Origin: Eutreptiella sp. 'Long Island Sound 2002'
Lineage: Eukaryota; Protista; Euglenida
Length of the DNA: 64,000 nt
Assembly: GCA_964036045.1 (NCBI GenBank)
Contig: OZ038378.1
Coordinates: 176,266,001 to 176,330,000 of the forward strand
Reading direction: 5' to 3'
Within the stretch, counting starts at the first letter, position 1. Each line of letters begins with the position of its first letter. The notes under the pieces were generated by a model. That model made no database searches and was not told the origin of the DNA. It saw only the letters and a list, made by a program, of their open reading frames with translations. Below, one piece after another: positions 10,497-52,923 of the stretch. The position numbers and the translations under genes were made by a program.

Positions 10497-11080
<584 letters not shown>

Positions 11081-28807: not shown

Positions 28808-31800
28808 TGCAGTTGGGCCACTCCTCATTGATGAGTCAGTGTGCCGTTCCGTCACCACTCTAGGTTCCCGCTTTGCTTCGCTGGAACAGGTTCCACGGGC
28901 ACTTCTTTCCCGCAGTGGCCACAGGAGCGTCAGGGCAGTTCAGAGGCAACTGGCCCTCATGGCTCACTATCTGCCGTCGGTCAGCCAACGCTCAGTGCAA
29001 GAGGGCATAGATAAGGGCAAGGGGATATTGCACCTATACAAAGGCCACAGGCCGGTGCCTCTCACAAGCCCCCTTTGCGTTCTGAGTCACGAGTGGCCCA
29101 GCGGCGCCTCGCAGGCACGCTGGAGCTCAGCGGGTGCTACACACAATCCGTCTACTCCTACAGGTCTGAGGTACGTCCAGCCTTCATGGCCCTTGCCCTC
29201 AGGGCAGTGCAAAAACACACACACACTACAGGTAGTGGGCCGGTTCTATTGCGTGGACTAGGATGAGTCAGACGCATACTTGCGCCCCCAGAGGGAGGAC
29301 CAGTCCCGCCTGAATTCACTGCTATACCCCATGTGGGACTACGGCCCCTGGTCTCTGCAGTACTTCAACAGGATACAGGTGCGTGTGCTCACAGATGATG
29401 GCTTCACGGAGCCCTTTGTACTTGAGGTTGGCTTCCATCAGGGTGACAATATCTCACGTGAGGCGTACCAGCCACGATGCATCCTGGTCTCCACCACTCT
29501 GCCAGTGGACCCCACAGTGTATATCCCACATCAGGGCCATCGCCATGTCATCAACAACCTCATGTTTTCCGATGACAGGCGACTGTGTGCTGCCACCAAA
29601 CAGAGCATGGTTCATCAGGCACAGGTCTGTGTGTGGGGCACACGAGCCAAAGCGGGCACCATACACCCGGGTAAGTTGCTGTTCTACTCATGGCGTGTGG
29701 GTGACACAGGCATGCATCTGTGCACCGAGGATGTACCTGAATTCCAAACGGTCACATCAACGGAGCCTCCTACAGTGCTTGGCATACCAGTGACACATCA
29801 GGTCCTGCCTGTAACACGCATGCAGGGACTACTGCAGGCTGCCCGTCGCCGCAAGGCAAAAGTGAGTATGGAGTCCGTGTGTGTGCCCCTTAGTCTCAGA
29901 GCGTATGTCATGTATGTCCTGTCAGCAATGTATTACATTGGCGGCGCAGTGTGGGCCCCCCCTCAGTCAATCCATGAACTCGAGGTCCTCACCAGGAAGT
30001 ACTGGAAGAAAGTCCTGGGTCTCCCACCCTGGACCAGGGACACGTATATGCACCTGCCTGTCAGACGCGGGGGTCCGGGGTGCCCACATCTGCCATCCGG
30101 GCTCCACCTACGTCTCTTGCAGACGTATATGGCAGCCTCCCACTCCCGTAACGAGTTGTCTATGGCAGCAGCCCAGTACCTAGCTACCACTGTCTCGTCT
30201 CTTTCCGAGGGTGCAGCCCTTCAAGAGGGTATCCAGCCCATGGGACTGTTGCTGCACGCAGTCCCATCGTCAGACTGCCCGCCACTACAGCACACGGCAT
30301 GGGGCGACCTCCGTGCCTGCCTACGCTCACCAAAACTGGTGGCGGTGACAGATGCCTCCATCAAAGGGTGTGTGCATGTGTGTGATGTGGTGCTGTATGC
30401 GCCCACCGTCCCGGCCATGGCGTGTTGTGCGCTCTCGTACCGGGCCCATGATCAGGACCCAACGTACCCCGGGACCATGGCCCGTCTGCTTCTGCTTCAC
30501 ATCCTTGCTGACTGGGTAGGTGTCCTGTGGTTGGCCTACGACTGTGTTTCCGCCCTATGGCGCATGTTCACGGTGTTGCCCTGGAAGGAAACCATCTTGT
30601 CCACTATATTTCGGAGTCTATCCTATGTGTAACAGCGTATCACACTCAGAGAGCTGTGGTTGCCAGCGGAACACAACACCGGGTGGACAGACACCCTGAG
30701 TGGCCTTTAGGCGCGTGCCCATTTGACAGCCTGGGCCAGGGCATCAGTAGACCCTGGAGCGGGTGTCCCCCCTGTCGGGTCACCTTATTGGCCGCCTGGT
30801 GCTCTTCTACCGCGGGGCTCTGCTTCTGGCCCCCCACCGCTGTCTGGATGAGGTGTATCAGGCGTATGTCAGTGTGAGCCGTCCAGGTCTGGAGGCAGAG
30901 CCAGGGTGGGATGGCTCAATGTTCTGGACCCATGTAGAGTCCACACCCCTTTATGACATGGGCGGTGCGGCGCGCTTTTGCATTGTGGCTCCTAGCCCAC
31001 CAGCCACCGCCCGTGGGCGTGGCCCTAGAACGCCATTACTGCGGCGCAGTGCTTCCAGCCATGCAGAAACACGTGTTTGAAGTGTGCCCCTCCTATCACC
31101 TCACTCACATGCACACGTTTGCCGGATTGTTGGGCAGTAGTGGGCTGCCCTTGTCGGGCACCCTAATGGAGGGACACACATAAGTCCCGCATCATGGTCC
31201 GTATATACTTCGATTTTTGCGTGACCAGCACAATGTGCCCCCCCCCCGCTGGCAGGACTAGGGTACTATGTTACTGTCACCCATACAGGTCTTGTACATG
31301 TCTCAGGTGGTGCTCCGGCGCCGGGTGTAGTCAAGGGCCAAGTGGCAGAAGTGGTTCGGGCCCTCACTCGTCCCTGCCCCACAGTCGAGGAAGTGCTGCG
31401 ACGCTGGGCAGCCCTCGGTCCGTCCCTGGAGTGTGCCCCGTCGCCGGTGACGGTACAGGGCGTGACACGTCACGGTGAGGATGTATTGCCTCAGTCCGTC
31501 GGTATCGTGGTTGGCCTAGTGTTGCGTGGACTGGCCCACTGGGAATTGCAGTTATATGGACGCCTCAGCATACCACCTCCACATGTCCAGCCCCTGCGGC
31601 AGGGCAGGTTGACAACTGTCTATGCGGCTACAAGTGCAGGGGCGGATGAAGCCGCGGCTCTTGTGTCAGGTTCCAGGACCCGGTCTGCACGAATGGTGCT
31701 CGTTCATGAGCGTCCGGTTCGAGCCCCCCTTGTGGGTGCATCGACTTGGATGCATCTGCATGCAGTGGGCTCGGTGCTGGTCTTTATGGTACACTCAATC

Positions 31801-32112
31801 CCTCTGGGACCCGATGGTGTGGACCTACAATATTCGTGGTGAAGTTAGAAGTCCCAGACCAGCTCTTGCTACGTGTGCAAGGGCGGGTTCATGTCTCTGA
31901 CTGCCGTGCCCCTTGCCTGTGACCTCCAAACAGGTACATCGGCCCCTAGGATGTGTGAGAAAACTTCACTGCGCCAGTCTCGGAATGGGTCTGTGGTGGT
32001 TTGAGTGGCTCCGAGTCCAGTGCGGGGCAGCCTGCGGCACGGCCGGCTGGTGCACATCATTGGCTCTGCGATGTGTCTGGCAGGTGTTGGACACACTCCC
32101 ATCCCATCCCAT
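28808..32112 (+). mobile_element. 5'-truncated non-LTR retrotransposon (RT plus degenerate RNase H) with 13-bp TSD and (ATCCC)3 tail
   Basis: LYKGHRPVPL, YCVD*DESDAY, GFHQGDNIS and LMFSDD RT motifs; VAVTDAS..WLAYDCVSAL..LWLPAEH RNase H-like; cccctcccgttct at 28795-28807 and 32113-32125. Confidence 0.85.
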
Positions 32113-33350
32113 CCCCTCCCGTTCTATGAGGTGTTGGGGACCCCCTAGACGACAAGGGGTGATGTAGCCAATCTGCCCTCATGTGGGCCACTGCTGATTT
32201 TGTCCCCCGCTTTGATCTGTTCGGAACCCCCCATACGGCGCACGGCAGTGGTGATGAAGTGAATCTGCCCACATGTAGGCCACTACTGATCCCGCCCCCC
32301 CCCCGCGCTGTGAAGCATTGGGCACACCACGGAGGGCAAGGGTGATGAAGCCCATCTGCCCACATGCGGGCCACTGCTGATTTTGTCCCCTGCTTTGAAG
32401 CGTTGGCAACCCCCTAGACGGTAAGGATGATGAAAATTGAATCTGCCCACATGTGGGCCACTGCTGATTTTGTCCCTCGCTTTGTAGGGTGGGGGAACAC
32501 AGTTGATTTTGTCCCCCGCTCTCAAGCCTTGCAGCCCTCCTATACTGCAGGGGTGATGTAGCCATCTTCCCGCATGTGTGACATTGCTGCCCCCCCCCCC
32601 CCCTCCCGTTCTATGAGGTGTTGGGGACCCCCTAGACGGCAAGGGGTGATGTAGCCAATCTGCCCTCATGTGGGCCACTGCTGATTTTGTCCCCCGCTTT
32701 CAAGCGTTGGGGACCAGCCAGATGCCACGGGTGATGCAGCCAATCTGCATGCATGTGGGCCACTGCTGATTTTGTCCCCCGCTATGAACCGTTAGGAACC
32801 CCCCATATGGCGGACGGCTGTGGTGATGAAGCGAATCTGCCCACATGTAGGCCACTGCTGATTTTTTCCCCCGCTGTGAAGTGTTGGGCACACCCCGAAC
32901 GGCAAGGGTGATGTAGCCCATCTGCCCACATGCGGGCCACTACTGATTTTGTCCCCTGCTTTGAGGCGTTGGCAACCCCCTAGACGGTAAGGATGACGAA
33001 AATCGAATCTGCCCACATGTGGGCCACTGCTGATTTTGTCCCTCGCTTTGTAGGGTGGGGGAACACAGTTGATTTTGTCCCCCGCTCTCAAGCCTTGCGA
33101 CCCTCCTATATTGCAGGGGTGATGTAGCCAATCTGCCCACATGTGTGCAAGTGTTGATCCCCCCCACCCCCGCGCTATGGGGCGATGGGGGGGCCCTAGA
33201 CCGCAAGGGGTGATGTAGCCAATCTGCCCTCATGTGGGCCACAGCTTATTTTCTCCCCCGCTTTGAAGCGTTGGGGACCACCCACATGCCACGGGTGATG
33301 TAGCCAATCTGCATGCATGTGGGCCACTACTGATTTTGCCCCTCGCTTTG
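32113..33350 (-). repeat. 80-85 bp satellite array
   Basis: Same units, resuming in register after the retroelement. Confidence 0.95.
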
Positions 33351-34760
33351 CCTGGCGTCACACTATGGTCAGCGGTAAGGGCGGTGTTGTCCGACCGATG
33401 CATGCACAAGCACAACGGCCGTATGGGCCGCCCCACGTGGGACCTCTCCCTAACCCTGTGGGTGAAGGTTCTGCATGACCGCGAGGAGCACCCCACCCCT
33501 ACTTTGCCGAGGGAGAAATTGCTGTACTGGTGCATGCGCTCAAATCCAACATAGTGCTGCAGCACCCCAAGATGGCAGTGCCAAACACATGCTCCCCCCC
33601 AAAACTGTTCGTCCCAGCACGCAAAAGGAAGAAAACATTCGACAACACCGCGGCCCTAGCGGCCTAGTATGCAACAATCATCAGCTCATATAGAAACCAG
33701 GGATGGGACATCATCTACCCGGATGGCTCCTCTGAAAAACCTCCGGAGAAAGGGTGGGTCGGGGGGTATGGTGTGTCCTTTGGGGACCATCGCGATGTGG
33801 CGGAGTACATTCTTTTTTTGGGGGACCCAACCAACAACCGGGGCGAATTGCGGGCAGCGCTATGCAGCCTGCAGGGGCACCGGGCATGTCACTGCTCCCT
33901 CACCTGCCCAGACTCACTGCTAGTGGTCAATTGTGTGCTGGGTTGGGCACAGCAGTGGCGCCAACACAAATGGCAAAACACGTCCGGTGCAGTTAAACAT
34001 GTGGACCTGTGGACAGCGATTCTGGACCTGCTCGAGCATTAGGAGAGGCGGTAAAGTGGCTGCACATCCCCTCCCATATTGGCATCAAAGGCAATGAACG
34101 GGTGGACCACTAGGCTGATGTGGGACGGTGCCGCTCCCCCTTGCTATTCGGGCAAGTTTCCCCAGCAGGATGAGGGCCCAGACCCGGAGGAAGAATCCAT
34201 TTGGGGCTGGGGGGAACGACAAATGTCATAGCCAGACTAGGCCCCACCCGCAGTGGAGGGAGCCGACACGCCGCCGGCGACACAACTAGCCACTGCCGGA
34301 GAAGTCACAGCCACCGTCGCGAGCGCCACTGTGGGACATCGAAAATGGCACCCCGGTTCAAGTCCCCAAAAGGGCTGGGAGGCCCACGCTAGGGACTGAT
34401 GCACCGTGGTCTGTAGTGCACCCCGGTAGGGCAAGTAGGACTGACCGGACCCCCTCCACGTGCGCCACGGCCGCCACGCCATACCAAGCGGGGCCGACAC
34501 GCACATCGCTCTGCACTCCACATCCCTTCTCCCCCATGTCGCCCTAGGCGTCCATACAAGTGCTGGCATCGCTGGAGCTGGTGGCAATGGAGGGCGAGGA
34601 ACCCCCCCTCACCCGCAATCTCAGCTTTTCGACCTCGTCACAGGAGGTCTGCTCGGACGAGTCCGCGCCGACCTCTCTCTCCACGGCTTCCACGGTGTCA
34701 TGCAGCACGGGAGGGTCGCGCTGTTTCACCCCCTGAATGTTGCATGTTGTGTGTAAACCG
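33351..34760 (+). mobile_element. 3' fragment of a second RNase H-bearing retroelement family, decayed
   Basis: WDIIYPDGS..GYGVSFG..TNNRGELRAAL..PDSLLVV..W..HKW..VKHVDLW..WLHIPSHIGIKGNERVD, an RNase H1-type domain with stops. Confidence 0.8.
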
Positions 34761-35081
34761 ACTTTAACCAGACCTGAACCCATTGGGATTTTCAACCCAA
34801 GGCCGTGTACAAGCCTGACCACGTGAGGCCAAATGGGGCCACCTGACGTAGCAACACGGGGAGGGAGTGACCCATGACCGGTATGTACGCCTAACCCAAT
34901 AGAGCCCGAAGCACCCGTGTAGCTAGTGGAGGCAGGGTCGAGGGACGAGCACCGGCTCACCGAACGCCCAGCAGAAGCGCCGTACATTGGCACCAAGGAC
35001 AGAAGCCAATGACAGTTGCGGGGCAGGCGTGGCCAGAGCCTAATGCGGACACTGCAAGCTGACCATGTTGAGGCTCCCAAG

Positions 35082-37090
35082 CGGCATTGGTGATGAAGCG
35101 AATCTGCCCACACACGGGCCTCTGTTGATTTTGTCCCCCGCTTTGAAGCGTTGGGAACCCCCTAGATGGCAGGGTGATCAAACAAACCTGCCCACATGTG
35201 GGCCACTGCTGATTTTGTCCGTCCCTCCGGAGGGTGGGGCCCAATGCTGATTTAGTCTGCCGCCCTCCCAGACTTTAGAGGTGATGCAGCCAATCCCCCC
35301 ACATGTGTGCCAGTGCTAATCCCCCCCCACCCCCGCGCTATGGGGCGTTCGGGACCCCTAGACGGCAAGGGGTGATGTAGCCCATCTACCCTCAGGTGGG
35401 CCACTACTGATTTTGCCCCCGCTTTGAACCGTTCAGAACCCCCTAGATTGTAGGCCCAAGATTGCAGTGGTGCTGATGCGAATTTGCCCACATATGGGCC
35501 ACTGTTGATTTTGTCCCGTGCACTTAGCGGTGTTGGGGACCCCCCAAATGGCAAGGGTGATGTAGCAAATCTGCCCACATGTGGGGCACTGCCGATCCCC
35601 CCCCCCCCCCGTTGTGAAGTGTTGGGGACCGACCAGGGGTGATGTAGCCGATCTACTCACATGTGGGCGACTGCTAATTTTGTCGCCCGCTTTGAAGCGT
35701 TGATGACCTCCCAAACGGCATTTCTGATGAAGCAAATCTACCCACTCGCGGGCCTCTGCTGATCTTGTCCCCCGCTTTGAAGCGTTGGGTACCCCCTAGA
35801 TGGCAAGGTGATGTAGCCAATCTGCCCACATGTGGGCCATTGCTGATTTTGTCCACCGCGTGGGACCCCTAATGCCGCAAGGGTGACATAGCCAATCTGC
35901 CCACCTCTGGGCCACCGTTGATATCTGAAGCGTTGGGGACTCCCCAGACGGCAGGGGTGATGTCCGCAATCTGCCCACTTGTGGGCCATTGCTGATTTTT
36001 TGCCCCGTTGTAGAGCGTTGGGGACCTCTCAGATGGCAAGGGCAATGTATCTTATCTTCCCACATGTGGGCCACTGGTTATCCCCCCCCCCCTCTTTGAA
36101 GCATTGGGGAACCCCAGGCCGGCAAGGGTGATGTAGCCAATTTGCCCACCTTTGGGCCACTGCTGACTTTGTGCCCTGTTCTCAACCGTTGGGGACCCCC
36201 GAGACAGCACCGGTTATGTCGCCAATCTCCCCACATGTAAGCCATTGCTACCCCCCCCGCTGTGAATCGTTGGGGACCGCCCCTCCCCAGACGGCAGGGT
36301 TAATGTCACCACTCTGCCCACATGTGGGCCACTGCTGATTTTGTCCCCCGCTGTGAAGCTTTGGGGACCCCGCAGACGGCAGGGGCGATGTAGCCAATCC
36401 GCCCAAATGTGGGCCGTTGCTAATTTTGTCCCCTGCTCTGAAGCGCTGGGCACCATCAAGGCGGCGGGCATGATGTCACCAGTCTGCCCACTTGTGGGCC
36501 ACTGCTGATTGTGTCGCCCACTCTGAAGCGTTCAGGGCCCCCCACACGCGAGGGGTGATGTAGCCAATAACTTGGCAGCTGCTGAATTTTGCCCCCGCTC
36601 TAGATAGTTGGGGACCTCCCACACGGCAAGGGTGATATAGCCAATCTGCCCAAATGTGGGCTACCACTCATCTTGTCCCCTGCTCTGATGCGTTTAAGAC
36701 CCCAGGATGGCAGGGGCGATGTAGCCAATTTGTCCACTTTTGGGCCACTGTTGTCCCCCGCTTTGAAGCGTTTGAAACCTCCAAGACGGCAAGGGTGATG
36801 TCGTTAATTTTTCCACATGTGGGCCACTGCCGGTTCTTCCCTCCACTCTTAAGCGTTGGGGATGTTGTAGATGGCACTGGTGATGTGCGCAGTCTGCCCA
36901 CTTGTCGGCCACTTCTGATTTTTCCCCCCACTGTGTAGCGTTTGGGACCTGCTAGACGATAGGAATGATGTAGCCAATATGTCCACCACATGTGGGTTGC
37001 TGCTGATTTTGTCCCCCGCTGTGAAGCGTTGGGGATCCCTAAGACGGCAAGGGTGATGTAGCCAATCTGCCCACCTTTTGTCCCCCGCAC
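35082..37090 (-). repeat. 80-85 bp satellite array, more diverged
   Basis: Same core with more substitutions and no clear 563-bp periodicity. Confidence 0.93.
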
Positions 37091-37431
37091 GGGTCATTCA
37101 AGTGCCTGGTGATGATTTGGAGAGGGTGACTGAGCTTCCTTGCTCTCCACTGTTCCCCCCGCGGCACCTAAGTTCAAGGTGCACTTTCAGAGATTGAGGA
37201 GAGTGTAACGCCACCCCCACCCCGGTCAAAGGTCAGGATGCCGAGACTCATGAGAGTGTTTCGGACACCCCTACCTCGCAAGGCAAGGATGCCTCCTCCG
37301 AGTAAAGTGTGGAAGGCCCCTAGTGTGCAACCTTCCATGGCCACTTCTGCAACAAAGGAGGACACCCGTCCACGGGTCCTTATCTGTGGAAAGCGGCGCA
37401 AGGTGCCAGATAGCTACCCCAAAGTTGTCAG

Positions 37432-37575
37432 CTGCGTGACCAGCTGTTCATTGAGAAGTTGACCAAGTAGCTGGTAGTGGAGTTGCGTGCAGCTTCTTAG
37501 CTAAAAACCAGTCCTAGTGGGAATCCCAAGTCCTCCGACACCAAGATCGACCTGATCTACAAATGTGCATTCTGC
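37432..37575 (+). pseudogene. Possible SAP-like domain remnant
   Basis: LRDQLFIEKLTK*LVVELRAAS*LKTSPSGNPKSSDTKIDLIYK resembles the L..V.EL....G.K.DLI pattern; two stops. Confidence 0.25.
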
Positions 37576-38546
37576 AACTACTTGTAGCTGGTGCATTTTT
37601 TGTTGGCATTTTACCTTACTATATTTCCCCCGGCCTTTTTCGTGTCCCAAAGGTAGAGCCTGTAGATATGCTTCTATAATGATCCCATCCCAGTGCCTTC
37701 TTCGCCACGGAGAGTATTTCCATTTGCCCCATTGGCTGTCGCGGTCTTTCCACAGGATGCAGAAGCCTCTGGGCCTTCAAGCATCTGAGTGGATGTCCTT
37801 TTTGCCCCAATCTGAATTAAATGGTGGCACTAATATTGGCTATGGCCTTGACAGAACTCTTTTCTTGAGCCTGATTTTGTTCCTAGTGCTGGCACACCGA
37901 TGTTGGCCATGGCCCTGTCGGGACTCTTTTCTTGAGCCTGATTTTGTTTCTAGTGCCAATTACACCATGTGATACTATTTTATATTGGCCGAGTCCCCAC
38001 TAATTGGTGGCCATATAGACTACTTTGTGCTTTGTGGACAGGGCGTCCCATCGTTAAGGTCGCTATGGGGTGCCGTACGGAACCAGCAATTGTACATATT
38101 GATCACGTATTGCAAAAGTTGCATTTTTTTTTTCAATTTTCCAATTTCTTTTGTAATTACACAGCTTACCGCAAAAAAAAAATACATGATTTTCCCGTAA
38201 AAGAAAAATTACATGACATGATGATTTTTTTTAATACATGAGCCACATTTTTCACAGCTTCAATGGCATTTGTAACAGTAACTCCCCCCAACCGCTTTGG
38301 CAACCTCCTCCAACCGCTTTGGCAACCGCCTGTCGGACCGCTTCTGGGGCCACCTCCGAGGTCCCTTCTCTTCTAATGCATCCCTGCCCCCCCCCCCCCC
38401 TTGTGAAAACTGGGTTGAAAATAAACCCTCTAGATTTTATACTCTTTAGCAATTATTACCGATTTGCGCTCACACCCGTCCTTTTTTTTGTGCGCGCAGG
38501 GAATTATTAGAATGTCTCGCTCAATAGTGGTATTGCATACTTAGAT

Positions 38547-38998
38547 TGAAGGGGCTGTTGCTTTCATCCCATCAACCCCGCAGAAGACAGGGATGGTGCC
38601 CCAGCCTCCAGAGCGTTCTCCGCCAGTCCTCCTTTGTAAGGGGGAGGGGGATCCGGGCCTTCAGTACCCACCCACGCAGACCAAGTTGAGGTACCCAGCC
38701 AGATCTCCCCCCTCTCCAGCACCCACCCACCACCTCATAAACAAACATATCTTGGGGGCCGGGCCCCAAATACCGACTGAGATGACCCTGGACGCCAATG
38801 TTCGGAAAAACTGAAAATGGTGTTTTTGGCATGAGTGCGACGAGGGATTCAGAAAAATCCTCATTTGCCTAGTATTTGGTGGAATGCATTCCAACAACGA
38901 CTTTTGACCCTCAAAAACATTTTGGCGCCTTCATTTATAGTCACGAACTAATGGCCCGGGTCACTGAGCCCTTGGCCTGGACCCATCCAGCCACCAAC
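38547..38998 (+). repeat. About 440-bp interspersed repeat, copy 2
   Basis: Highly similar to 22427-22860. Confidence 0.9.
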
Positions 38999-39611
38999 AG
39001 ATTGCAAAAGAAAACTACGTAAACTACGTAATATCCACGTCCAACTTGCTGGGTGTTATTTCTGTTCGCGGAAAAAACATTCAAACCCAAGAACGCTACC
39101 AAATTGAAAAATGGCGTTGGGGTTCGGGTTGACAACCTTGCAGGGGTCCTTTGATCTTCTAATCTAAGTACAGCAAGATTATCTTGAGACTGCGTGCCAG
39201 TTTTCACTACAACAGAAAAACACCCGTCTTTTCCTTTTTACCGCGAAAGCGCGGCACGTTCAAAAACGTTTCTGGGAGACTCTTTCTAACCGAAATTCAG
39301 TTTATGTCCTTTATATATGCTCGACGTAGCCTCCCTAATAGGAACAAGAGCTTCACTAGGGCCTCCTAGGCTAACTAACCAGCTATTTGGCAGGCGCATT
39401 TTTCCTTTTTTTTCCGGATTGGTATTGTTTGCAAATTTGGACGAGGGGTGACATTTTTTGCCCAAAAGCACGAACAATAAGAATTGCGATTTGATCTTTG
39501 GAGGATTGGTGACCCCGCTGCTATATCTTGTTGAACTCCACCAAATTTGTTGTCAGGTTGCCAGTTCCAAGATGATGCGGCGTCACTCCTCAACAACAGC
39601 CAGGAAATTGG

Positions 39612-40898
39612 GTGCATGGATATATATGTATATATATATATATATATATATGTACTTTTGGGTGCGTTATGGTTTGTGGTTTGCATCTGGTATGTGGTCG
39701 TTACTTTTCGACACCGAAACGCAGCGTCAAATTCGAGCGCACCGCGGAAGCTTACGCAGATATCACCAGCAACCGTATTCACAAGACAGCGGCCAAGCCT
39801 CTCATGATGAGACACAGTCGTGGTGGCATCGATCACAACGCCGTGCGCCATCATGAAGTGGACAAGGAGCCGCGAACCGCCGCCGAGCCACTGGCCCAGG
39901 CGGCTGCAAATGGCACTTGGCTAGTTACTGGCGCGGCTGGCTTCATCGGATTCCACACAATTCAGCAACTGGCAAGTCATAAAAATTCGGTGGTCGGCAT
40001 CGACAGCTTCAACTCGGACTACTCGCCGCCGCTCAAATTTAAGCGCGCTAGTTTACTCACTTCGCAGTTTCCCGATAAAGTGCGGATCATTCACGGCAGC
40101 GCCTGCGAAGAAGAGCTGCTGTCGCGTGTGCTGCGTGAACACAAAGTGGTACGACTGCTGCACTTGGCTGCGCAGGTGGGCGTGCGTGACTCGCCCCATT
40201 ACCCTCTCACTTACGAACGCAACAACGTGCGCTGCTTCATATCGCTGTTGGAAACTCTGCGGAGCGATCAGCCCACGCTGCCCCTCGTGTACACCTCTTC
40301 GTCGAGCGTGTATGGCTTGAACAGACCCAAAGTCAAAAGTAATAGGAACATCACCGACTGGCCAGCCAGCGTGCGTGCTTCGACGAAGCGAAGCAACGAA
40401 ATGACTGCGACGAGGTATCACAGCCTTTATGGCCTGCGGCTGACCGGGCTGCGCTTTTTCACAGTGTACGGCGAGTACGGCAGGCCCAACATGGCCTACT
40501 TCAGCTTTTCAGACCGCATTTTCCGCAACGACACCATCCAACTCTACAATGGCGGCCAAAGCATGCGTGATTATACACACGTGTCTGACATTGTTTCTGG
40601 AATAATCGCAGCCGTCCAGAAAAGTGACAACTTCGACAACGAGGTGTTCGACCTGGGCAATGGCCACCCCCACTCCGTCTCAGAGCTGTGGTCCTTGCTG
40701 ACTCAGAGTCTCGCACTGAAGTACGACCACGTTTCGCTGGTGCAAGGCAAACCAAAGGGCGAGATTTTGAAGACGTACACGTCCGTGGACAAAGCGCAGA
40801 GACTGCTCGGCTATGAGCCCAATGTGTCACTGCAAGAAGGCGTCGCTCGCTTCGCCAAGTGGTATGTGCAAGAGTACCACGACTGTGTCTCATCATGA
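39612..40898 (+). pseudogene. UDP-glucuronate 4-epimerase-like extended SDR, intronless, probably non-functional
   Basis: WLVTGAAGFIG, HLAAQVGVR, SSSSVYGLN, GLRFFTVYGEYGRPNMAYF, RDYTHVSDIV, LGYEP..L.EG..RF.KWY. YxxxK reads RASTK; stop codon lies in the inverted arm; N-terminus disturbed by (TA)n. Confidence 0.8.
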
Positions 40899-41044
40899 GA
40901 GGCTTGGCCGCTGTCTTGTGAATACGGTTGCTGGTGATATCTGCGTAAGCTTCCGCGGTGCGCTCGAATTTGACGATGCGTTTCGGTGTCGAAAAGTAAC
41001 GACCACATACCAGATGCAAACCACAAACCATAACGCACCCAAAA

Positions 41045-41083
<39 letters not shown>

Positions 41084-43629
41084 TATCCATGCACCCAATT
41101 TCCTGGCTGTTGTTGAGGAGTGACGCCGCATCATCTTGGAACTGGCAACCTGACAACAAATTTGGTGGAGTTCAACAAGATATAGCAGCGGGGTCACCAA
41201 TCCTCCAAAGATCAAATCGCAATTCTTATTGTTCGTGCTTTTGGGCAAAAAATGTCACTCCTCGTCCAAATTTGCAAACAATACCAATCCGGAAAAAAAA
41301 GGAAAAATGCGCCTGCCAAATAGCTGGTTAGTTAGCCTAGGAGGCCCTAGTGAAGCTCTTGTTCCTATTAGGGAGGCTACGTCGAGCATATATAAAGGAC
41401 ATAAACTGAATTTCGGTTAGAAAGAGTCTCCCAGAAACGTTTTTGAACGTGCCGCGCTTTCGCGGTAAAAAGGAAAAGACGGGTGTTTTTCTGTTGTAGT
41501 GAAAACTGGCACTCAGTCTCAAGATAATCTTGCTGTACCTAGATTAGAAGATCAAAGGACCCCTGCAAGGTTGTCAACCCGAACCCCAACGCCATTTTTC
41601 AATTTGGTAGCGTTCTTGGGTTTGAATGTTTTTTCCGCGAACAGAAATAACACCCAGCAAGTTGGACGTGGATATTTACGTAGTGCGCAGTACGTATGAA
41701 TCCGAGCCGAGTTTTTCTGTTGCAATCTGTTGGTGGCTGGATGGGTCCAGGCCAAGGGCTCATTGACCCGGGCCATTAGTTCGTGACTATAAATGAAGGC
41801 GCCAAAATGTTTTTGAGGGTCAAAAGTCGTTGTTGGAATGCATTCCACCAAATACTAGGCAAATGAGGATTTTTCTGAATCCCTCGTCGCACTCATGCCA
41901 AAAACACCATTTTCAGTTTTTCCGAACATTGGCGTCCAGGGTCATCTCAGTCGGTATTTGGGGCCCGGCCCCCAAGATATTTTTGTTTATGAGGTGGTGG
42001 GTGAGTGCTGGAGGGGGGGGAGATCTGGCTGGGTACCTCAACTTGGTCTGCGTGGGTGGGTACTGAAGGCCCGGATCCCCCTCCCCCTTACAAAGGAGGA
42101 CTGGCGGAGAACGCTCCGGAGGCTGGGGCACCATCCCTGTCTTCTGCGGGGTTGATGGGATGAAAGCAACAGCCCCTTCAATCTAAGTATGCAATACCAC
42201 TATTGAGCGAGACATTCTAATAATTCCCTGCGCGCACAAAAAAAAGGACGGGTGTGAGCGCAAATCGGTAATAATTGCTAAAGAGTATAAAATCTAGAGG
42301 GTTTATTTTCAACCCAGTTTTCACAAGGGGGGGGGGGGGCAGGGATGCATTAGAAGAGAAGGGACCTCGGAGGTGGCCCCAGAAGCGGTCGGACGGGCGG
42401 TTGCCAAAGCGGTTGGAGGAGGTTGCCAAAGCGGTTGGGGGGAGTTACTGTTAGTTACAAATGCCATTGAAGCTGTGAAAAATGTGGCTCATGTATTAAA
42501 AAAAATCATCATGTCATGTAATTTTTCTTTTACGGGAAAATCATGTATTTTTTTTTTGCGGTAAGCTGTGTAATTACAAAAGAAATTGGAAAATTGAAAA
42601 AAAAATGCAACTTTTGCAATACGTGATCAATATGTACAATTGCCGGTTCCGTACGGCACCCCATAGCAACCTTAACGACGGGACGCCCTGTCCACAAAGC
42701 ACAAAGTAGTCTATATGGCCACCAATTAGTGGGGACTCGGCCAATATAACATAGTATCACATGGTGTAATTGGCACTAGAAACAAAATCAGGCTCAAGAA
42801 AAGAGTCCCGACAGGGCCATGGCCAACATCGGTGTGCCAGCACTAGGAACAAAATCAGGCTCAAGAAAAGAGTTCTGTCAAGGCCATAGCCAATATTAGT
42901 GCCACCATTTAATTCAGATTGGGGCAAAAAGGACATCCACTCAGATGCTTGAAGGCCCAGAGGCTTCTGCATCCTGTGGAAAGACCGCGACAGCCAATGG
43001 GGCAAATGGAAATACTCTCCGTGGCGAAGAAGGCACTGGGATGGGATCATTATAGAAGCATATCTACAGGCTCTACCTTTGGGACACGAAAAAGGCCGGG
43101 GGAAATATAGTAAGGTAAAATGCCAACAAAAAATGCACCAGCTACAAGTAGTTGCAGAATGCACATTTGTAGATCAGGTCGATCTTGGTGTCGGAGGACT
43201 TGGGATTCCCACTAGGACTGGTTTTTAGCTAAGAAGCTGCACGCAACTCCACTACCAGCTACTTGGTCAACTTCTCAATGAACAGCTGGTCACGCAGCTG
43301 ACAACTTTGGGGTAGCTATCTGGCACCTTGCGCCGCTTTCCACAGATAAGGACCCGTGGACGGGTGTCCTCCTTTGTTGCAGAAGTGGCCATGGAAGGTT
43401 GCACACTAGGGGCCTTCCACACTTTACTCGGAGGAGGCATCCTTGCCTTGCGGGTGTCCGAAACACTCTCATGAGTCTCGGCATCCTGACCTTTGACCGG
43501 GGTGGGGGTGGCGTTACACTCTCCTCAATCTCTGAAAGTGCACCTTGAACTTAGGTGCCGCGGGGGGAACAGTGGAGAGCAAGGAAGCTCAGTCACCCTC
43601 TCCAAATCATCACCAGGCACTTGAATGAC

Positions 43630-45640
43630 CCGTGCGGGGGACAAAAGGTGGGCAGATTGGCTACATCACCCTTGCCGTCTTAGGGATCCCCAACGCTTCA
43701 CAGCGGGGGACAAAATCAGCAGCAACCCACATGTGGTGGACATATTGGCTACATCATTCCTATCGTCTAGCAGGTCCCAAACGCTACACAGTGGGGGAAA
43801 AAATCAGAAGTGGCCGACAAGTGGGCAGACTGCGCACATCACCAGTGCCATCTACAACATCCCCAACGCTTAAGAGTGGAGGGAAGAACCGGCAGTGGCC
43901 CACATGTGGAAAAATTAACGACATCACCCTTGCCGTCTTGGAGGTTTCAAACGCTTCAAAGCGGGGGACAACAGTGGCCCAAAAGTGGACAAATTGGCTA
44001 CATCGCCCCTGCCATCCTGGGGTCTTAAACGCATCAGAGCAGGGGACAAGATGAGTGGTAGCCCACATGTGGGCAGATTGGCTATATCACCCTTGCCGTG
44101 TGGGAGGTCCCCAACTATCTAGAGCGGGGGCAAAATTCAGCAGCTGCCAAGTTATTGGCTACATCACCCCTCGCGTGTGGGGGGCCCTGAACGCTTCAGA
44201 GTGGGCGACACAATCAGCAGTGGCCCACAAGTGGGCAGACTGGTGACATCATGCCCGCCGCCTTGAAGGTGCCCAGCGCTTCAGAGCAGGGGACAAAATT
44301 AGCAACGGCCCACATTTGGGCGGATTGGCTACATCGCCCCTGCCGTCTGCGGGGTCCCCAAAGCTTCACAGCGGGGGACAAAATCAGCAGTGGCCCACAT
44401 GTGGGCAGAGTGGTGACATTAACCCTGCCGTCTGGGGAGGGGCGGTCCCCAACGATTCACAGCGGGGGGGGGGTAGCAATGGCTTACATGTGGGGAGATT
44501 GGCGACATAACCGGTGCTGTCTCGGGGGTCCCCAACGGTTGAGAACAGGGGACAAAGTCAGCAGTGGCCCAAAGGTGGGCAAATTGGCTACATCACCCTT
44601 GCCGGCCTGGGGTTCCCCAATGCTTCAAAGAGGGGGGGGGGGATAACCAGTGGCCCACATGTGGGAAGATAAGATACATTGCCCTTGCCATCTGAGAGGT
44701 CCCCAACGCTCTACAGCGGGGCAAAAAATCAGCAATGGCCCACAAGTGGGCAGATTGCGGACATCACCCCTGCCGTCTGGGGAGTCCCCAACGCTTCAGA
44801 TATCAACGGTGGCCCAGAGGTGGGCAGATTGGCTATGTCACCCTTGCGGCATTAGGGGTCCCAAGCGGTGGACAAAATCAGCAATGGCCCACATGTGGGC
44901 AGATTGGCTACATCACCTTGCCATCTAGGGGGTACCCAACGCTTCAAAGCGGGGGACAAGATCAGCAGAGGCCCGCGAGTGGGTAGATTTGCTTCATCAG
45001 AAATGCCGTTTGGGAGGTCATCAACGCTTCAAAGCGGGCGACAAAATTAGCAGTCGCCCACATGTGAGTAGATCGGCTACATCACCCCTGGTCGGTCCCC
45101 AACACTTCACAACGGGGGGGGGGGGATCGGCAGTGCCCCACATGTGGGTAGATTTGCTACATCACCCTTGCCATTTGGGGGGTCCCCAACACCGCTAAGT
45201 GCACGGGACAAAATCAACAGTGGCCCATATGTGGGCAAATTCGCATCAGCACCACTGCAATCTTGGGCCTACAATCTAGGGGGTTCTGAACGGTTCAAAG
45301 CGGGGGCAAAATCAGTAGTGGCCCACCTGAGGGTAGATGGGCTACATCACCCCTTGCCGTCTAGGGGTCCCGAACGCCCCATAGCGCGGGGGTGGGGGGG
45401 GATTAGCACTGGCACACATGTGGGGGGATTGGCTGCATCACCTCTAAAGTCTGGGAGGGCGGCAGACTAAATCAGCATTGGGCCCCACCCTCCGGAGGGA
45501 CGGACAAAATCAGCAGTGGCCCACATGTGGGCAGGTTTGTTTGATCACCCTGCCATCTAGGGGGTTCCCAACGCTTCAAAGCGGGGGACAAAATCAACAG
45601 AGGCCCATGTGTGGGCAGATTCGCTTCATCACCAATGCCG
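43630..45640 (+). repeat. 80-85 bp satellite array (mirror of 35082-37090)
   Basis: Direct reading of units. Confidence 0.93.
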
Positions 45641-45961
45641 CTTGGGAGCCTCAACATGGTCAGCTTGCAGTGTCCGCATTTGGCTCTGGCCACGCCTGCC
45701 CCGCAACTGTCATTGGCTTCTGTCCTTGGTGCCAATGTACGGCGCTTCTGCTGGGCGTTCGGTGAGCCGGTGCTCGTCCCTCGACCCTGCCTCCACTAGC
45801 TACACGGGTGCTTCGGGCTCTATTGGGTTAGGCGTACATACCGGTCATGGGTCACTCCCTCCCCGTGTTGCTACGTCAGGTGGCCCCATTTGGCCTCACG
45901 TGGTTAGGCTTGTACACGGCCTTGGGTTGAAAATCCCAATGGGTTCAGGTCTGGTTAAAGT

Positions 45962-47371
45962 CGGTTTACACACAACATGCAACATTCAGGGGGTGAAACA
46001 GCGCGACCCTCCCGTGTTGCATGACACCGTGGAAGCCGTGGAGAGAGAGGTCGGCGCGGACTCGTCCGAGCAGACCTCCTGTGACGAGGTCGAAAAGCTG
46101 AGATTGCGGGTGAGGGGGGGTTCCTCGCCCTCCATTGCCACCAGCTCCAGCGATGCCAGCACTTGTATGGACGCCTAGGGCGACATGGGGGAGAAGGGAT
46201 GTGGAGTGCAGAGCGATGTGCGTGTCGGCCCCGCTTGGTATGGCGTGGCGGCCGTGGCGCACGTGGAGGGGGTCCGGTCAGTCCTACTTGCCCTACCGGG
46301 GTGCACTACAGACCACGGTGCATCAGTCCCTAGCGTGGGCCTCCCAGCCCTTTTGGGGACTTGAACCGGGGTGCCATTTTCGATGTCCCACAGTGGCGCT
46401 CGCGACGGTGGCTGTGACTTCTCCGGCAGTGGCTAGTTGTGTCGCCGGCGGCGTGTCGGCTCCCTCCACTGCGGGTGGGGCCTAGTCTGGCTATGACATT
46501 TGTCGTTCCCCCCAGCCCCAAATGGATTCTTCCTCCGGGTCTGGGCCCTCATCCTGCTGGGGAAACTTGCCCGAATAGCAAGGGGGAGCGGCACCGTCCC
46601 ACATCAGCCTAGTGGTCCACCCGTTCATTGCCTTTGATGCCAATATGGGAGGGGATGTGCAGCCACTTTACCGCCTCTCCTAATGCTCGAACAGGTCCAG
46701 AATCGCTGTCCACAGGTCCACATGTTTAACTGCACCGGACGTGTTTTGCCATTTGTGTTGGCGCCACTGCTGTGCCCAACCCAGCACACAATTGACCACT
46801 AGCAGTGAGTCTGGGCAGGTGAGGGAGCAGTGACATGCCCGGTGCCCCTGCAGGCTGCATAGCGCTGCCCGCAATTCGCCCCGGTTGTTGGTTGGGTCCC
46901 CCAAAAAAAGAATGTACTCCGCCACATCGCGATGGTCCCCAAAGGACACACCATACCCCCCGACCCACCCTTTCTCCGGAGGTTTTTCAGAGGAGCCATC
47001 CGGGTAGATGATGTCCCATCCCTGGTTTCTATATGAGCTGATGATTGTTGCATACTAGGCCGCTAGGGCCGCGGTGTTGTCGAATGTTTTCTTCCTTTTG
47101 CGTGCTGGGACGAACAGTTTTGGGGGGGAGCATGTGTTTGGCACTGCCATCTTGGGGTGCTGCAGCACTATGTTGGATTTGAGCGCATGCACCAGTACAG
47201 CAATTTCTCCCTCGGCAAAGTCGGGGTGGGGTGCTCCTCGCGGTCCTGCAGAACCTTCACCCACAGGGTTAGGGAGAGGTCCCACGTGGGGCGGCCCATA
47301 CGGCCGTTGTGCTTGTGCATGCATCGGTCGGACAACACCGCCCTTACCGCTGACCATAGTGTGACGCCAGG
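45962..47371 (-). mobile_element. Mirror copy of the RNase H retroelement fragment
   Basis: Reverse complement of 33351-34760. Confidence 0.8.
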
Positions 47372-49170
47372 CAAAGCGAGGGGCAAAATCAGTAGTGGCC
47401 CACATGCATGCAGATTGGCTACATCACCCGTGGCATGTGGGTGGTCCCCAACGCTTCAAAGCGGGGGAGAAAATAAGCTGTGGCCCACATGAGGGCAGAT
47501 TGGCTACATCACCCCTTACCGTCTAGGGGCCCCCCATCGCCCCATAGCACGGGGGTGGGGGGGATCAACACTTGCACACATGTGGGCAGATTGGCTACAT
47601 CACCCCTGCAGTATAGGAGGGTCGCAAGGCTTGAGAGCGGGGGACAAAATCAACTGTGTTCCCCCACCCTACAAAGCGAGGGACAAAATCAGCAAAGGCC
47701 CACATGTGGGCAGATTCGATTTTCGTCATCCTTACCATCTAGGGGGTTCCCAATGCTTCACAGTGGGGTACAAAATCAGCAGTGGCCCGCATGTGGGCAG
47801 ATGGGCTACATCACCCTTGCTGTCCGGGGTGTGCCCAACACTTCACAGCGGGGGGGGAAATTAGTAGTGGCCTACATGTGGGCAGATTCGCTTCATCACC
47901 ACTGCCATCTGCCGTATGGGGGGTTCCGAACGGTTCATAGCGGGGGGCAAAATCAGCAGTGGCCCACATGCATGCAGATTGGCTATCACCTGTGGCATCT
48001 AGGTGGTCCCCAATGCTTCAAAGCGGGGGACAAAATCAGCAATGGCCCACATGAGGGCAGATTGGCTACATCACCCCTTGCGGTCTAAGGGGCCCCCCAT
48101 CGCCCCATAGCGCGGGGGTGGGGGGGATCAACACTTGCACACATGTGGGCAGATTGGCTACATCACCCCTGCAATATAGGAGGGTCGCAAGGCTTGAGAG
48201 CGGGGGACAAAATCAACTGTGTTCCCCCACCCTACAAAGCGAGGGACAAAATCAGCAAAGGCCCACATGTGGGCAGATTCGATTTTCGTCATCCTTACCG
48301 TCTAGGGGGTTGCCAACGCCTCAAAGCAGGGGACAAAATCAGTAGTGGCCCGCATGTGGGCAGATGGGCTACATCACCCTTGCCGTTCGGGGTGTGCCCA
48401 ACACTTCACAGCGGGGGAAAAAATCAGCAGTGGCCTACATGTGGGCAGATTCGCTTCATCACCACAGCCGTCCGCCATATGGGGGGTTCCGAACGGTTCA
48501 TAGCGGGGGACAAAATCAGCAGTGGCCCACATGCATGCAGATTGGCTGCATCACCCGTGGCATCTGGGTGGTCCCCAACGCTTGAAAGCGGGGGACAAAA
48601 TCAGCAGTGGCCCACATGAGGGCAGATTGGCTACATCACCCCTTGCCGTCTAGGGGGTCCCCAACACCTCATAGAACGGGAGGGGGGGGGGGGGGCAGCA
48701 ATGTCACACATGCGGGAAGATGGCTACATCACCCCTGCAGTATAGGAGGGCTGCAAGGCTTGAGAGCGGGGGACAAAATCAACTGTGTTCCCCCACCCTA
48801 CAAAGCGAGGGACAAAATCAGCAGTGGCCCACATGTGGGCAGATTCAATTTTCATCATCCTTACCGTCTAGGGGGTTGCCAACGCTTCAAAGCAGGGGAC
48901 AAAATCAGCAGTGGCCCGCATGTGGGCAGATGGGCTTCATCACCCTTGCCCTCCGTGGTGTGCCCAATGCTTCACAGCGCGGGGGGGGGGGGATCAGTAG
49001 TGGCCTACATGTGGGCAGATTCACTTCATCACCACTGCCGTGCGCCGTATGGGGGGTTCCGAACAGATCAAAGCGGGGGACAAAATCAGCAGGGGCCCAC
49101 ATGAGGGCAGATTGGCTACATCACCCCTTGTCGTCTAGGGGGTCCCCAACACCTCATAGAACGGGAGGGG
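47372..49170 (+). repeat. 80-85 bp satellite array (mirror of 32113-33350 plus an extra unit of about 560 bp)
   Basis: Near-identical blocks at about 47480-48040 and 48040-48600. Confidence 0.93.
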
Positions 49171-49775
49171 ATGGGATGGGATGGGAGTGTGTCCAACACC
49201 TGCCAGACACATCGCAGAGCCAATGATGTGCACCAGCCGGCCGTGCCGCAGGCTGCCCCGCACTGGACTCGGAGCCACTCAAACCACCACAGACCCATTC
49301 CGAGACTGGCGCAGTGAAGTTTTCTCACACATCCTAGGGGCCGATGTACCTGTTTGGAGGTCACAGGCAAGGGGCACGGCAGTCAGAGACATGAACCCGC
49401 CCTTGCACACGTAGCAGGAGCTGGTCTGGGACTTCTAACTTCACCACGAATATTGTAGGTCCACACCATCGGGTCCCAGAGGGATTGAGTGTACCATAAA
49501 GACCAGCACCGAGCCCACTGCATGCAGATGCATCCAAGTCGATGCACCCACAAGGGGGGCTCGAACCGGACGCTCATGAACGAGCACCATTCGTGCAGAC
49601 CGGGTCCTGGAACCTGACACAAGAGCCGCGGCTTCATCCGCCCCTGCACTTGTAGCCGCATAGACAGTTGTCAACCTGCCCTGCCGCAGGGGCTGGACAT
49701 GTGGAGGTGGTATGCTGAGGCGTCCATATAACTGCAATTCCCAGTGGGCCAGTCCACGCAACACTAGGCCAACCA
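49171..49775 (-). mobile_element. Mirror copy of the 3' end of the 28808-32112 retroelement
   Basis: atgggatgggatgggagtgtg.. is the reverse complement of 31508-32112. Confidence 0.9.
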
Positions 49776-51189
49776 ATGCTACGGTTGCAGACATCCAATA
49801 TTGAGTCCATCGTGGCACAAACCAAACTTTTACATTGGTGTGCACATTGGCATGCACAAACCACCAACAAGCAACTGGGTCCCATCTCGGCGGACCAGAT
49901 CTATTTGTGACCATCGTGCCCCACTTCATGTTTTTGTTCTGGGCCTTCTGGTTCTGGCATTCCTGGCCTTCTTTTGCGATGACCAGCCTGCTTCACTGTT
50001 TACCCCACTGCAAGAGAACAACTCTTTCAGCTCGACTCGCAAAATGGCGGCGTACTGTCGGCTGAGAGCACAATGGCCACATCATCAACTGCATGCCTGG
50101 CTCTTTGCCTGGCTCTGGGGTGCATGACGACCTTGTGCTTTGATTGTGAGATACAGTATCTTTACTGAAACAGCTACACTACAAAAGTGTTGCTCTTTCC
50201 AAACAAGATATTCTTCTTTTCAACAAGATGTTCCTGAAACTGCTGAATATCAAACAAATCCTAAAGATTTGCGGCACAAGGTGGTGTTGTCTGCAAAAAA
50301 AAAAACGCAAAAAAAAACGCAACAAAAAATAATTTTTGGCGTCATGCCCTGCGCAAAAATGGGTTCCGCAAAAATAAAACTCGCAACATATTTTTTGCCG
50401 CTGCCTCCCCCTTTTGCACTGATGCCAGAATCACAGGAGAGTTTGCCCCACTGCTTGTCTCATGCCCCATTCTGCACCTTGCTTTGCTTTCAGAGAATGA
50501 TGAATCAGGGACCAGGTATCAGGGCATCCAAGATTGTCACAATATTAGATATTTCAATCCGGATGCTGATGTGCCCCGAAGCAGATAAAGGGGCTATTTC
50601 TGCATGTTTCCCCCCCCCTTTTGGATGCCGTCGCAAAAATTTTGCTTAATAATTATTCAAAACACCCAACACAAAAATTAGGATTCCGCGAATCTTTAGG
50701 ATTTGTACGGTATTTGTGCACATAAGCATACCGTGGGTCAAAGGGAGCTCTGCTGATCCATCGATCCAAGAATCTCCACGACGAGAACAAATTGAAGCTG
50801 AAAGTTCTGCGCCCAGCAGTTCCCATGCGCACTCCAAATCTGCTCTTCGGCGAACCGGCCGACGAGAGAGGCGGCGTGGCAAGTTTGACGACTCAGCAGC
50901 CGATTCATCCAGTTGCACTCGTTCATTCCCCGACGTTGGTGGTTCATGGTTGTATTTGGCAGTGCTTTGGGACATATGATAATCTAGCTTGATAAAACAA
51001 AGCAAGCCGGGAATGAAGGTAAAAAGTTTACTTATGACAAATGTAGAAGGAACCAGTGCAGTTCGTGCGCGTGTCGTAGACCGAGTTCCACTTTTGTTCC
51101 GACAAAATGTGGAAGCCATGTTTGTTAATCATCTGAGAAATCACATTGGAAAACACCCCGAAGTTGCAGTTCTTGTTCTGACCCGTCAC
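49775..51189 (-). repeat. Left arm (B') of second inverted duplication
   Basis: aatgctacggttgcagac.. to ..tgttctgacccgtcac is the reverse complement of 51508-52923. Confidence 0.96.
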
Positions 51190-51669
51190 CGTTTCGTGCT
51201 GTTTTCGGACACAGCTGACGTGCGCTTCGGCATGGATCCATTCCAGTGGCTGGAACCGAACATAAAGCATATCGGCAACGAGCTGATGGTTGGCACAGAA
51301 GTCGGCAGGGACCGTAAAAGATGGCTCCGTTGGGTGGGCAACAAGGTGAAAGAGTGCTACCAAGCCAAAGTTCAGAGAACGACCATTTTGAAGGATATCG
51401 AGGGTTTGCAGAAACTGTGCAACCCTGGCTCTGGTGTTGCAGGCAGCGCGACTGCAGTCAGCAAGCTGCTGGCTGTGCTCAACCACGAGCTGTTAGAAGT
51501 GTTGAATGTGACGGGTCAGAACAAGAACTGCAACTTCGGGGTGTTTTCCAATGTAATTTTTCAGATGATTAACAAACATGGCTTCCACATTTTGTCGGAA
51601 CAAAAGTGGAACTCGGTCTACGACACGCGCACGAACTGCACTGGTTCCTTCTACATTTGTCATAAGTAA
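51190..51669 (+). pseudogene. 5'-truncated GT-A type glycosyltransferase-like gene
   Basis: FVLFSDTADVRFGMDPF (D..DV.F..DPF), CNPGSGVAG, NCNFGVF and terminal YICHK*; upstream in-frame sequence is the reverse complement of its own 3' end. Confidence 0.6.
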
Positions 51670-52923
51670 ACTTTTTACCTTCATTCCCGGCTTGCTTTGT
51701 TTTATCAAGCTAGATTATCATATGTCCCAAAGCACTGCCAAATACAACCATGAACCACCAACGTCGGGGAATGAACGAGTGCAACTGGATGAATCGGCTG
51801 CTGAGTCGTCAAACTTGCCACGCCGCCTCTCTCGTCGGCCGGTTCGCCGAAGAGCAGATTTGGAGTGCGCATGGGAACTGCTGGGCGCAGAACTTTCAGC
51901 TTCAATTTGTTCTCGTCGTGGAGATTCTTGGATCGATGGATCAGCAGAGCTCCCTTTGACCCACGGTATGCTTATGTGCACAAATACCGTACAAATCCTA
52001 AAGATTCGCGGAATCCTAATTTTTGTGTTGGGTGTTTTGAATAATTATTAAGCAAAATTTTTGCGACGGCATCCAAAAGGGGGGGGAAAACACGCAGAAA
52101 TAGCCCCTTTATCTGCTTCGGGGCACATCAGCATCCGGATTGAAATATCTAATATTGTGACAATCTTGGATGCCCTGATACCTGGTCCCTGATTCATCAT
52201 TCTCTGAAAGCAAAGCAAGGTGCAGAATGGGGCATGAGACAAGCAGTGGGGCAAACTCTCCTGTGATTCTGGCATCCGTGCAAAAGGGGGAGGCAGCGGC
52301 AAAAAATATGTTGCGAGTTTTATTTTTGCGGAACCCATTTTTGCGCAGGGCATGACGCCAAAAATTATTTTTTGTTGCGTTTTTTTTTTTGCGTTTTTTT
52401 TTTGCAGACAACACCACCTTGTGCCGCAAATCTTTAGGATTTGTTTGATATTCAGCAGTTTCAGGAACATCTTGTTGAAAAGAAGAATATCTTGTTTGGA
52501 AAGAGCAACACTTTTGTAGTGTAGCTGTTTCAGTAAAGATACTGTATCTCACAATCAAAGCACAAGGTCGTCATGCACCCCAGAGCCAGGCAAAGAGCCA
52601 GGCATGCAGTTGATGATGTGGCCATTGTGCTCTCAGCCGACAGTACGCCGCCATTTTGCGAGTCGAGCTGAAAGAGTTATTCTCTTGCAGTGGGGTAAAC
52701 AGTGAAGCAGGCTGGTCATCGCAAAAGAAGGCCAGGAATGCCAGAACCAGAAGGCCCAGAACAAAAACATGAAGTGGGGCACGATGGTCACAAATAGATC
52801 TGGTCCGCCGAGATGGGACCCAGTTGCTTGTTGGTGGTTTGTGCATGCCAATGTGCACACCAATGTAAAAGTTTGGTTTGTGCCACGATGGACTCAATAT
52901 TGGATGTCTGCAACCGTAGCATT
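51508..52923 (+). repeat. Right arm (B) of second inverted duplication
   Basis: gtgacgggtcagaac.. to ..caaccgtagcatt; a few SNPs versus B' (e.g. 51147-51153 versus the mirror at about 51544-51560). Confidence 0.96.

Follow-up and report, generated by a model that had tools for sequence, protein, structure and literature searches.

We identified a complex inverted rearrangement that has broken a gene encoding a sugar-nucleotide epimerase and, probably in the same reading frame, a glycosyltransferase-like domain in Eutreptiella sp. 'Long Island Sound 2002'. The locus lies in a 64,000-nt stretch of the 2.28-Gb assembly GCA_964036045.1 (contig OZ038378.1, positions 176,266,001 to 176,330,000), hereafter called the window. 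Its segments follow the order U-A-S1-A'-B'-S2-B-D, in which A and A' are inverted copies around a spacer, S1, and B' and B are inverted copies around a second spacer, S2. We consider it probable that this structure is real and arose in a single interstitial event that destroyed one gene, by way of one break or stalled fork, kilobase-scale fold-back or template-switch copying at both ends, and joining of the products.

The first-pass annotation of the window had described this geometry with three novel junctions. Inverted-repeat detection, blastn, and global alignment reproduced it, and all boundaries were recovered exactly (Table 1). A' and B' adjoin directly at 49775/49776 with no intervening DNA, and the net result is a gain of 10.3 kb of inverted flank copies (A' plus B') in place of the gene middle; the stretch that once linked S1 to S2 had been described as replaced by the reverse complements of B and A, which we confirmed, with ∼120 codons missing. 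S1 and S2 are each single-copy in both the window and the whole genome, as annotated. Since the next-best genomic copies of the arm repeats are at most ∼91% identical, chance matches between repeats do not account for the ∼99.4% identical arm pairs, which are specific duplicates. An unrearranged allele, whose possible existence the first-pass annotation had raised, was found neither in the assembly nor in protein collections; queries with S1, S2, three arm segments, and a family profile returned just the two arms and repeats of at most ∼91% identity in the 2.28-Gb assembly, and no third copy.

The arms are not identical. By global alignment, A and A' differ by 45 substitutions (0.54%; 22 transitions and 23 transversions) and 11 indel events, among them an extra 563-bp satellite unit in A' (∼47549-48111; two units in A versus three in A'), a 7-bp indel (37270-37276 versus 43453), a 20-bp complex indel (39018 versus 41689), a 4-bp TAAC tandem duplication, a (TA)3 length difference (39628 versus 41072), and changes of 1-2 bp in C/T runs. 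The single-nucleotide differences, 7-bp indel, TA length difference, and extra unit noted at first pass are thus all present in the alignments, and changes of these kinds (substitutions, 4-20 bp indels, and a satellite unit) are of a genuine polymorphism type and do not come from read errors. Between B' and B there are nine substitutions (0.64%) and one indel. The divergence rates of the two arm pairs, 45/8317 and 9/1414, are statistically the same (binomial p = 0.70), and this equal divergence supports a single event.

The two spacers had been read as the cores of two carbohydrate-enzyme genes. The epimerase assignment of S1 stands, whereas the two spacers appear to be not independent genes but the front and back of one unit, or of a tight gene pair. 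S1 and S2 were searched separately, never as one joined sequence, and the metagenomic protein P0123 matched both in order: its residues 1-139 align with residues 230-356 of the S1 product (pairwise E 3e-21) and its residues 261-407 with the S2-B open reading frame (ORF; pairwise E 4e-14). Across the whole genome, the family profile A3 matched at three sites only, namely the end of S1 (profile positions 51-189), S2-B (308-473), and the inverted B' copy. Because P0123 matches both parts in order and the A3 sites agree, S1 and S2 are, as judged from these alignments, parts in collinear order of a single gene with epimerase and glycosyltransferase-like portions, or else of two closely spaced genes. 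The intervening profile positions 190-307 (∼118-121 codons, the gene middle) were found nowhere in the 2.28-Gb assembly, and no intact version of the protein was found in collections of 15 billion proteins. A direct in-frame join of S1 to S2 was ruled out, as their frames are one base apart.

Proteins of this composite kind appear to exist elsewhere in the organism. The genome carries a paralogue, a 698-amino-acid (aa) intronless ORF combining PF01370 with PF04765 (TOD1/MUCI70 glycosyltransferase-like) at G000:C670:8987-11083 (equivalent to L006:538-2634, minus strand) and again on C87, which by its domain content indicates that epimerase plus glycosyltransferase-like fusions of ∼700 aa are present in this organism. 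Like the window gene, the fusions (the C670/C87 paralogue, P0067, and P0123 to P0125) have an N-terminal short-chain dehydrogenase/reductase of the UDP-sugar 4-epimerase type followed by a ∼290-aa domain with a glycosyltransferase-like fold. The C-terminal domain in the window, unlike that of the C670/C87 paralogue, is not PF04765 but belongs to a small family for which Pfam has no model, and the window copy, unlike the fusion proteins, lacks the first half of this domain as well as the catalytic Tyr of the epimerase. The gene is broken: its epimerase part ends in six foreign codons, and its transferase-like part lacks its first half. It is a matter of speculation whether S1, now flanked on both sides by convergent copies of its upstream region, might give rise to double-stranded RNA that silences the broken gene.

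S1 had been annotated as an epimerase core; the coding sequence (CDS) in the loop is in fact nearly complete, with an Arg in place of the catalytic Tyr. As the likely ATG is at 39804, the A/S1 boundary lies seven codons into the gene. The closest named relatives are UDP-glucuronate 4-epimerases (41-50% identity), the GxxGxxG motif is kept (TGAAGFIGF), and the domain is full length in an alignment with six homologues. In the YxxxK motif, the window copy has Arg at the position of the catalytic Tyr (SVRASTK, ∼40350-40390), with Ser and Lys retained, while all six homologues have Y-x-x-T-K. The domain may have been inactive or have functioned differently before or apart from the rearrangement. 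Past KWYVQEY, whose last codon ends at 40875, the frame continues for six codons into A' and then stops. The nearest homologue, P0002 (50% identity, 458 aa), is stand-alone; its contig has low coverage (L028, ERZ25074506 ctg11060_1.78x_l) and belongs to a sister ENA assembly, which names its contigs in the same style and probably derives from a related protist in the same sequencing project. The gene downstream of this homologue was considered as a counterpart of S2 and rejected, being unrelated to it.

The call of S2 as a glycosyltransferase found no support from Pfam or word searches; a weak GT6-like fold match of a distant homologue and a conserved motif point toward it. The S2 ORF had no Pfam match even at E 10 and no paralogue in the genome, a word search returned only the ORF itself, and the S2-like part of the family profile had no sequence match in the PDB. 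A full-library phmmer search yielded weak relatives, P0123 to P0127 (E 5e-6 to 6.5e-4), and in P0123, P0124, and P0125 a Pfam Epimerase domain precedes the S2-like domain. The family (P0123 to P0127 and P0129 to P0131, from ENA, JGI, and Logan metagenome contigs) shares a ∼290-aa domain, often behind an epimerase domain, with an invariant D-x-x-D-V-x-F-G-x-x-P-F motif within the longer signature D-x-x-D-V-x-F-G...C...H-K; S2 starts exactly at this motif. We modeled the distant homologue P0127 with AlphaFold2 from a nine-sequence alignment (mean predicted local distance difference test score 62.7, predicted template modeling score 0.69). The best structural matches of the model were all enzymes of glycosyltransferase family 6 (GT6) with the GT-A fold (Foldseek E ∼0.01), with a VIA-align Z of 8.9 and a root-mean-square deviation of 4.0-4.1 Å over 171-175 residues, where a Z of ∼8 is middling. 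From this model, a GT-A-like fold for the S2 domain is plausible.

We then consider how the structure could have formed. The ancestral order would have been U-A-[epimerase domain, S1]-[∼120 codons]-[GT-A-like back half, S2 plus the start of B]-B-D. Loss of ∼0.36 kb would have followed from a break, or from the collapse of a replication fork, within the gene. On the left, the 3' end at 40875 would have reached back 1,051 bp to resume synthesis on its own complementary strand, and the 8.3 kb copied from there in the reverse direction would be A'; on the right, the end at 51190 would have folded 318 bp back and copied 1.4 kb, yielding B'; and the two extended ends would have been joined at 49775/49776, the arms drifting ∼0.55% apart since the event. 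Three serial template switches by one polymerase, as proposed at first pass, are an alternative way of writing the same product, although none of the junctions shows the microhomology usual for such switches. The order of the steps and the enzymes that may have acted are deduced from the product, and the structure itself presumably exists in cells. Other formal routes were set aside. A transposon or foldback element was rejected as the arms are a patchwork of unrelated repeats and gene flanks and the unit has no other copy, a giant-virus insert was rejected as the large ORFs of the window hold no viral hallmark, and an inversion through staggered breaks predicts U-A-B'-M'-A'-B-D, which differs from the observed order.

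By inspection of the sequence, microhomology amounts to 0 bp at S1|A', 0-1 bp at A'|B', and 0 bp at B'|S2, with no filler bases at any of the three. All three junctions fall within 10.3 kb, and all templates lie within 21 kb. Junctions formed by template switching, as in fork stalling and template switching (FoSTeS) or microhomology-mediated break-induced replication (MMBIR), usually show at least 2 bp of microhomology. Human fold-back junctions usually have 2-8 bp of inverted microhomology, seen at 13 of 18 junctions (Hermetz et al. 2014, PMC3907307), and fold-back insertions in yeast likewise rely on microhomology (Yu et al. 2024, PMC11724301).

Several points weigh against a single cellular event. 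The blunt joints (0-1 bp) are untypical of cellular fold-back events, and the junctions are known from assembled sequence alone. Documented fold-back or templated insertions at breaks mostly measure tens of base pairs, far less than 8 kb. In magnitude, the ∼0.5% divergence between the arms is comparable to that of one haplotig-like contig pair, so the arms could be two alleles. With P0002, the closest epimerase homologue, being stand-alone, a fused ancestral gene is likely rather than proven, the alternative being two neighboring genes. In favor of a real structure, the locus also lies 157 kb inside a 1.09-Mb ENA contig (ERZ25074135:ctg10482_38x_l, label 38x), which matches the window without a difference along 21,287 bp and takes in two of the three junctions. 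Its naming style points to another assembler run with the same reads; the contig may, however, be the same assembly and hence not independent.

The main rival is a library or assembly chimera, in which the true locus would be U-A-S1-middle-S2-B-D and amplification template switching, a fold-back read, or a mis-join would have inverted A and B of the other haplotype, with the assembler taking that path. We regard this as unlikely, though it deserves real weight. An arm difference of 0.5% that includes indels and a satellite unit does resemble two alleles, haplotig-like contigs 0-0.17% apart persist in the assembly (C670 and C87 differ by 0.17% substitutions and 11 gaps and are 99.6% identical; two other pairs differ by 0-0.014%), and blunt junctions are not what fold-back repair in cells tends to produce. 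A chimera arising within a single molecule, however, would give identical arms, and the scenario needs three artefactual junctions in 10.3 kb that outvoted the normal reads deep within a 1.09-Mb, 38x contig. Palindromes from missed adapters have almost no spacer, unlike the 1,051 and 318 bp seen here; the window is free of N, and no junction carries an adapter remnant or any sequence resembling a SMRTbell adapter. Neither the assembly as a whole nor the protein collections contain the gene middle that the true locus should retain, and a bidirected assembly graph would presumably offer no path from S1 to A' unless reads hold that junction.

The rearrangement could instead be real with its inverted copies templated from the homologous chromosome, or be the sum of two separate fold-back events, which we judge very unlikely. 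Break-induced replication can switch templates between homologues, and the divergence of the arms is within a few-fold of that between haplotig-like contigs; if a homologue was the template, the 0.5% arm divergence would say how heterozygous the locus was when the event took place, not how long ago that was. Arm pairs that have diverged equally are compatible with either variant and do not discriminate, and it would take a coincidence for two independent events to meet exactly at 49775/49776. Less probable still is a contiguous B-A template supplied by an 11.5-kb circle (A-S1-middle-S2-B closed at the B|A joint) or a tandem duplicate and inserted backwards. A'B' is exactly the reverse complement of B followed by A, and such a B|A joint, with 1 bp of possible overlap, is what circularization of 31508-52923 would produce. 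The insert, however, lacks the reverse complements of S1 and S2, which would require two more precise deletions, there is no other B|A joint in the genome, and the scheme is not more parsimonious than local fold-back.

If real, the locus is a base-resolved natural case in which both ends of one break were extended by kilobase-scale fold-back synthesis and then joined, and it bridges the short templated inverted insertions of yeast and worm repair assays and the large fold-back duplications of human disease. It would also show the destruction of a bifunctional sugar-nucleotide gene, with the ∼0.55% divergence of both arm pairs as a handle for dating. If it is an artefact, it flags a multi-junction, haplotype-mixing class of error in an otherwise high-quality assembly. 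Either way, this is a single locus with no evident function, valuable as a case study and as a check on genome quality. That repair in this reportedly euglenid lineage recurrently takes the form of kilobase-scale snap-back from the two ends of one break, with joining free of microhomology, seems to us quite unlikely.

Table 1. Segments and reading frames of the rearranged locus, in window coordinates
Feature	Positions	Strand	Length	Content
Arm A	31508-39824	+	8,317 bp	Mostly dispersed repeats (85-bp and 563-bp satellites); 5' flank and first 7 codons of the epimerase gene
RNase H fragment	33797-34042			Within arm A
Epimerase ORF	39612-40898	+		NAD-dependent sugar epimerase, PF01370, E 4.9e-39
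Probable epimerase CDS	39804-40898	+		From likely ATG 39804; UDP-glucuronate 4-epimerase-like
Spacer S1	39825-40875	+	1,051 bp	Body of the epimerase CDS
Arm A'	40876-49775	-	8,900 bp	Reverse complement of A
Arm B'	49776-51189	-	1,414 bp	Reverse complement of B; inverted copy of the last 53 codons of the glycosyltransferase-like ORF
Spacer S2	51190-51507	+	318 bp	Begins in mid-domain of the glycosyltransferase-like part, at the conserved D-x-x-D-V-x-F-G motif
Glycosyltransferase-like ORF	51190-51669	+		Last 159 codons and stop; S2 plus first 162 bp of B; A3 profile positions 308-473
Arm B	51508-52923	+	1,416 bp	Original 3' end of the gene and downstream flank

The 85-bp satellite of the arms is organized in higher-order units of ∼563 bp at 20730-21596, 27076-28680, 32252-33350, and 35924-37075, with mirror sites in A', and occurs in both orientations. 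Elsewhere in the window, a tandem array at 2440-3403 comprises 20 copies of a 48-bp unit (96% matching; unit start GGTTAGGG) with an interstitial telomere-repeat-like motif, two long (GT)n microsatellites of 111 and 71 repeats lie at 10499-11080, and an intronless ORF on the plus strand (19026-19985) encodes an O-methyltransferase domain (PF01596, E 2.3e-12) amid repeat-rich DNA. An Rfam scan of the window gave no match. The same chromosome carries a second large inverted duplication (G000:C1:194718291-194743985), a 2,504-bp pair set 20.7 kb apart with a tandem array of ∼1-kb units inside; its copies are 100% identical, and in this zero divergence it is unlike A/A'.

Several known classes of rearrangement can be compared with the locus. 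FoSTeS/MMBIR and duplication-inverted triplication-duplication (DUP-TRP/INV-DUP) structures are replicative template-switch rearrangements. Like FoSTeS/MMBIR products, the locus has several junctions in cis, inverted segments copied from within ∼20 kb, and deletion combined with duplication; unlike these and DUP-TRP/INV-DUP structures, its segments are duplicated rather than triplicated, the switch points lack pre-existing inverted repeats, and microhomology is 0-1 bp. Palindromic or fold-back chimeras also occur in long-read libraries and assemblies, where they appear as a near-perfect inverted duplication within a contig. The locus departs from these in its spacers of hundreds of base pairs, its arms diverged by 0.54-0.64%, its three junctions, the lack of an adapter, and a position away from the contig end. 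The "snap-back" flank insertions made by polymerase theta represent the same type of inverted flank copy at a repaired break.

In human fold-back inverted duplications, non-duplicated spacers range from 766 bp to 70 kb and have been attributed to a 3' end that, once the DNA is broken, folds over and anneals to its own strand (PMC3907307). The window shares with these the inverted copy beside its template and the single-copy spacer between them, 1,051 bp in the case of S1. It is, however, interstitial and two-sided, both break ends having apparently been folded back and then joined with flank D continuing past B, while in the human cases only one side is involved, the deletion is terminal, and the intermediate is dicentric; its arms measure 8.3 and 1.4 kb and not megabases, S2 (318 bp) is below any human spacer, and inverted microhomology is 0 bp at both spacers. 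Templated inverted insertions at breaks (Yu et al. 2024, PMC11724301) are similar in that the insert is an inverted copy of the immediate flank, one end having been extended and the other captured by end joining. Those insertions are ∼5-34 bp long and microhomology-dependent (PMC11724301), whereas the insert here is 10.3 kb, derives from both flanks, and has blunt joints. Taken together, these comparisons place the locus as a fold-back/template-switch complex rearrangement of a known kind, notable for being two-sided, kilobase-scale, blunt-jointed, and intragenic.

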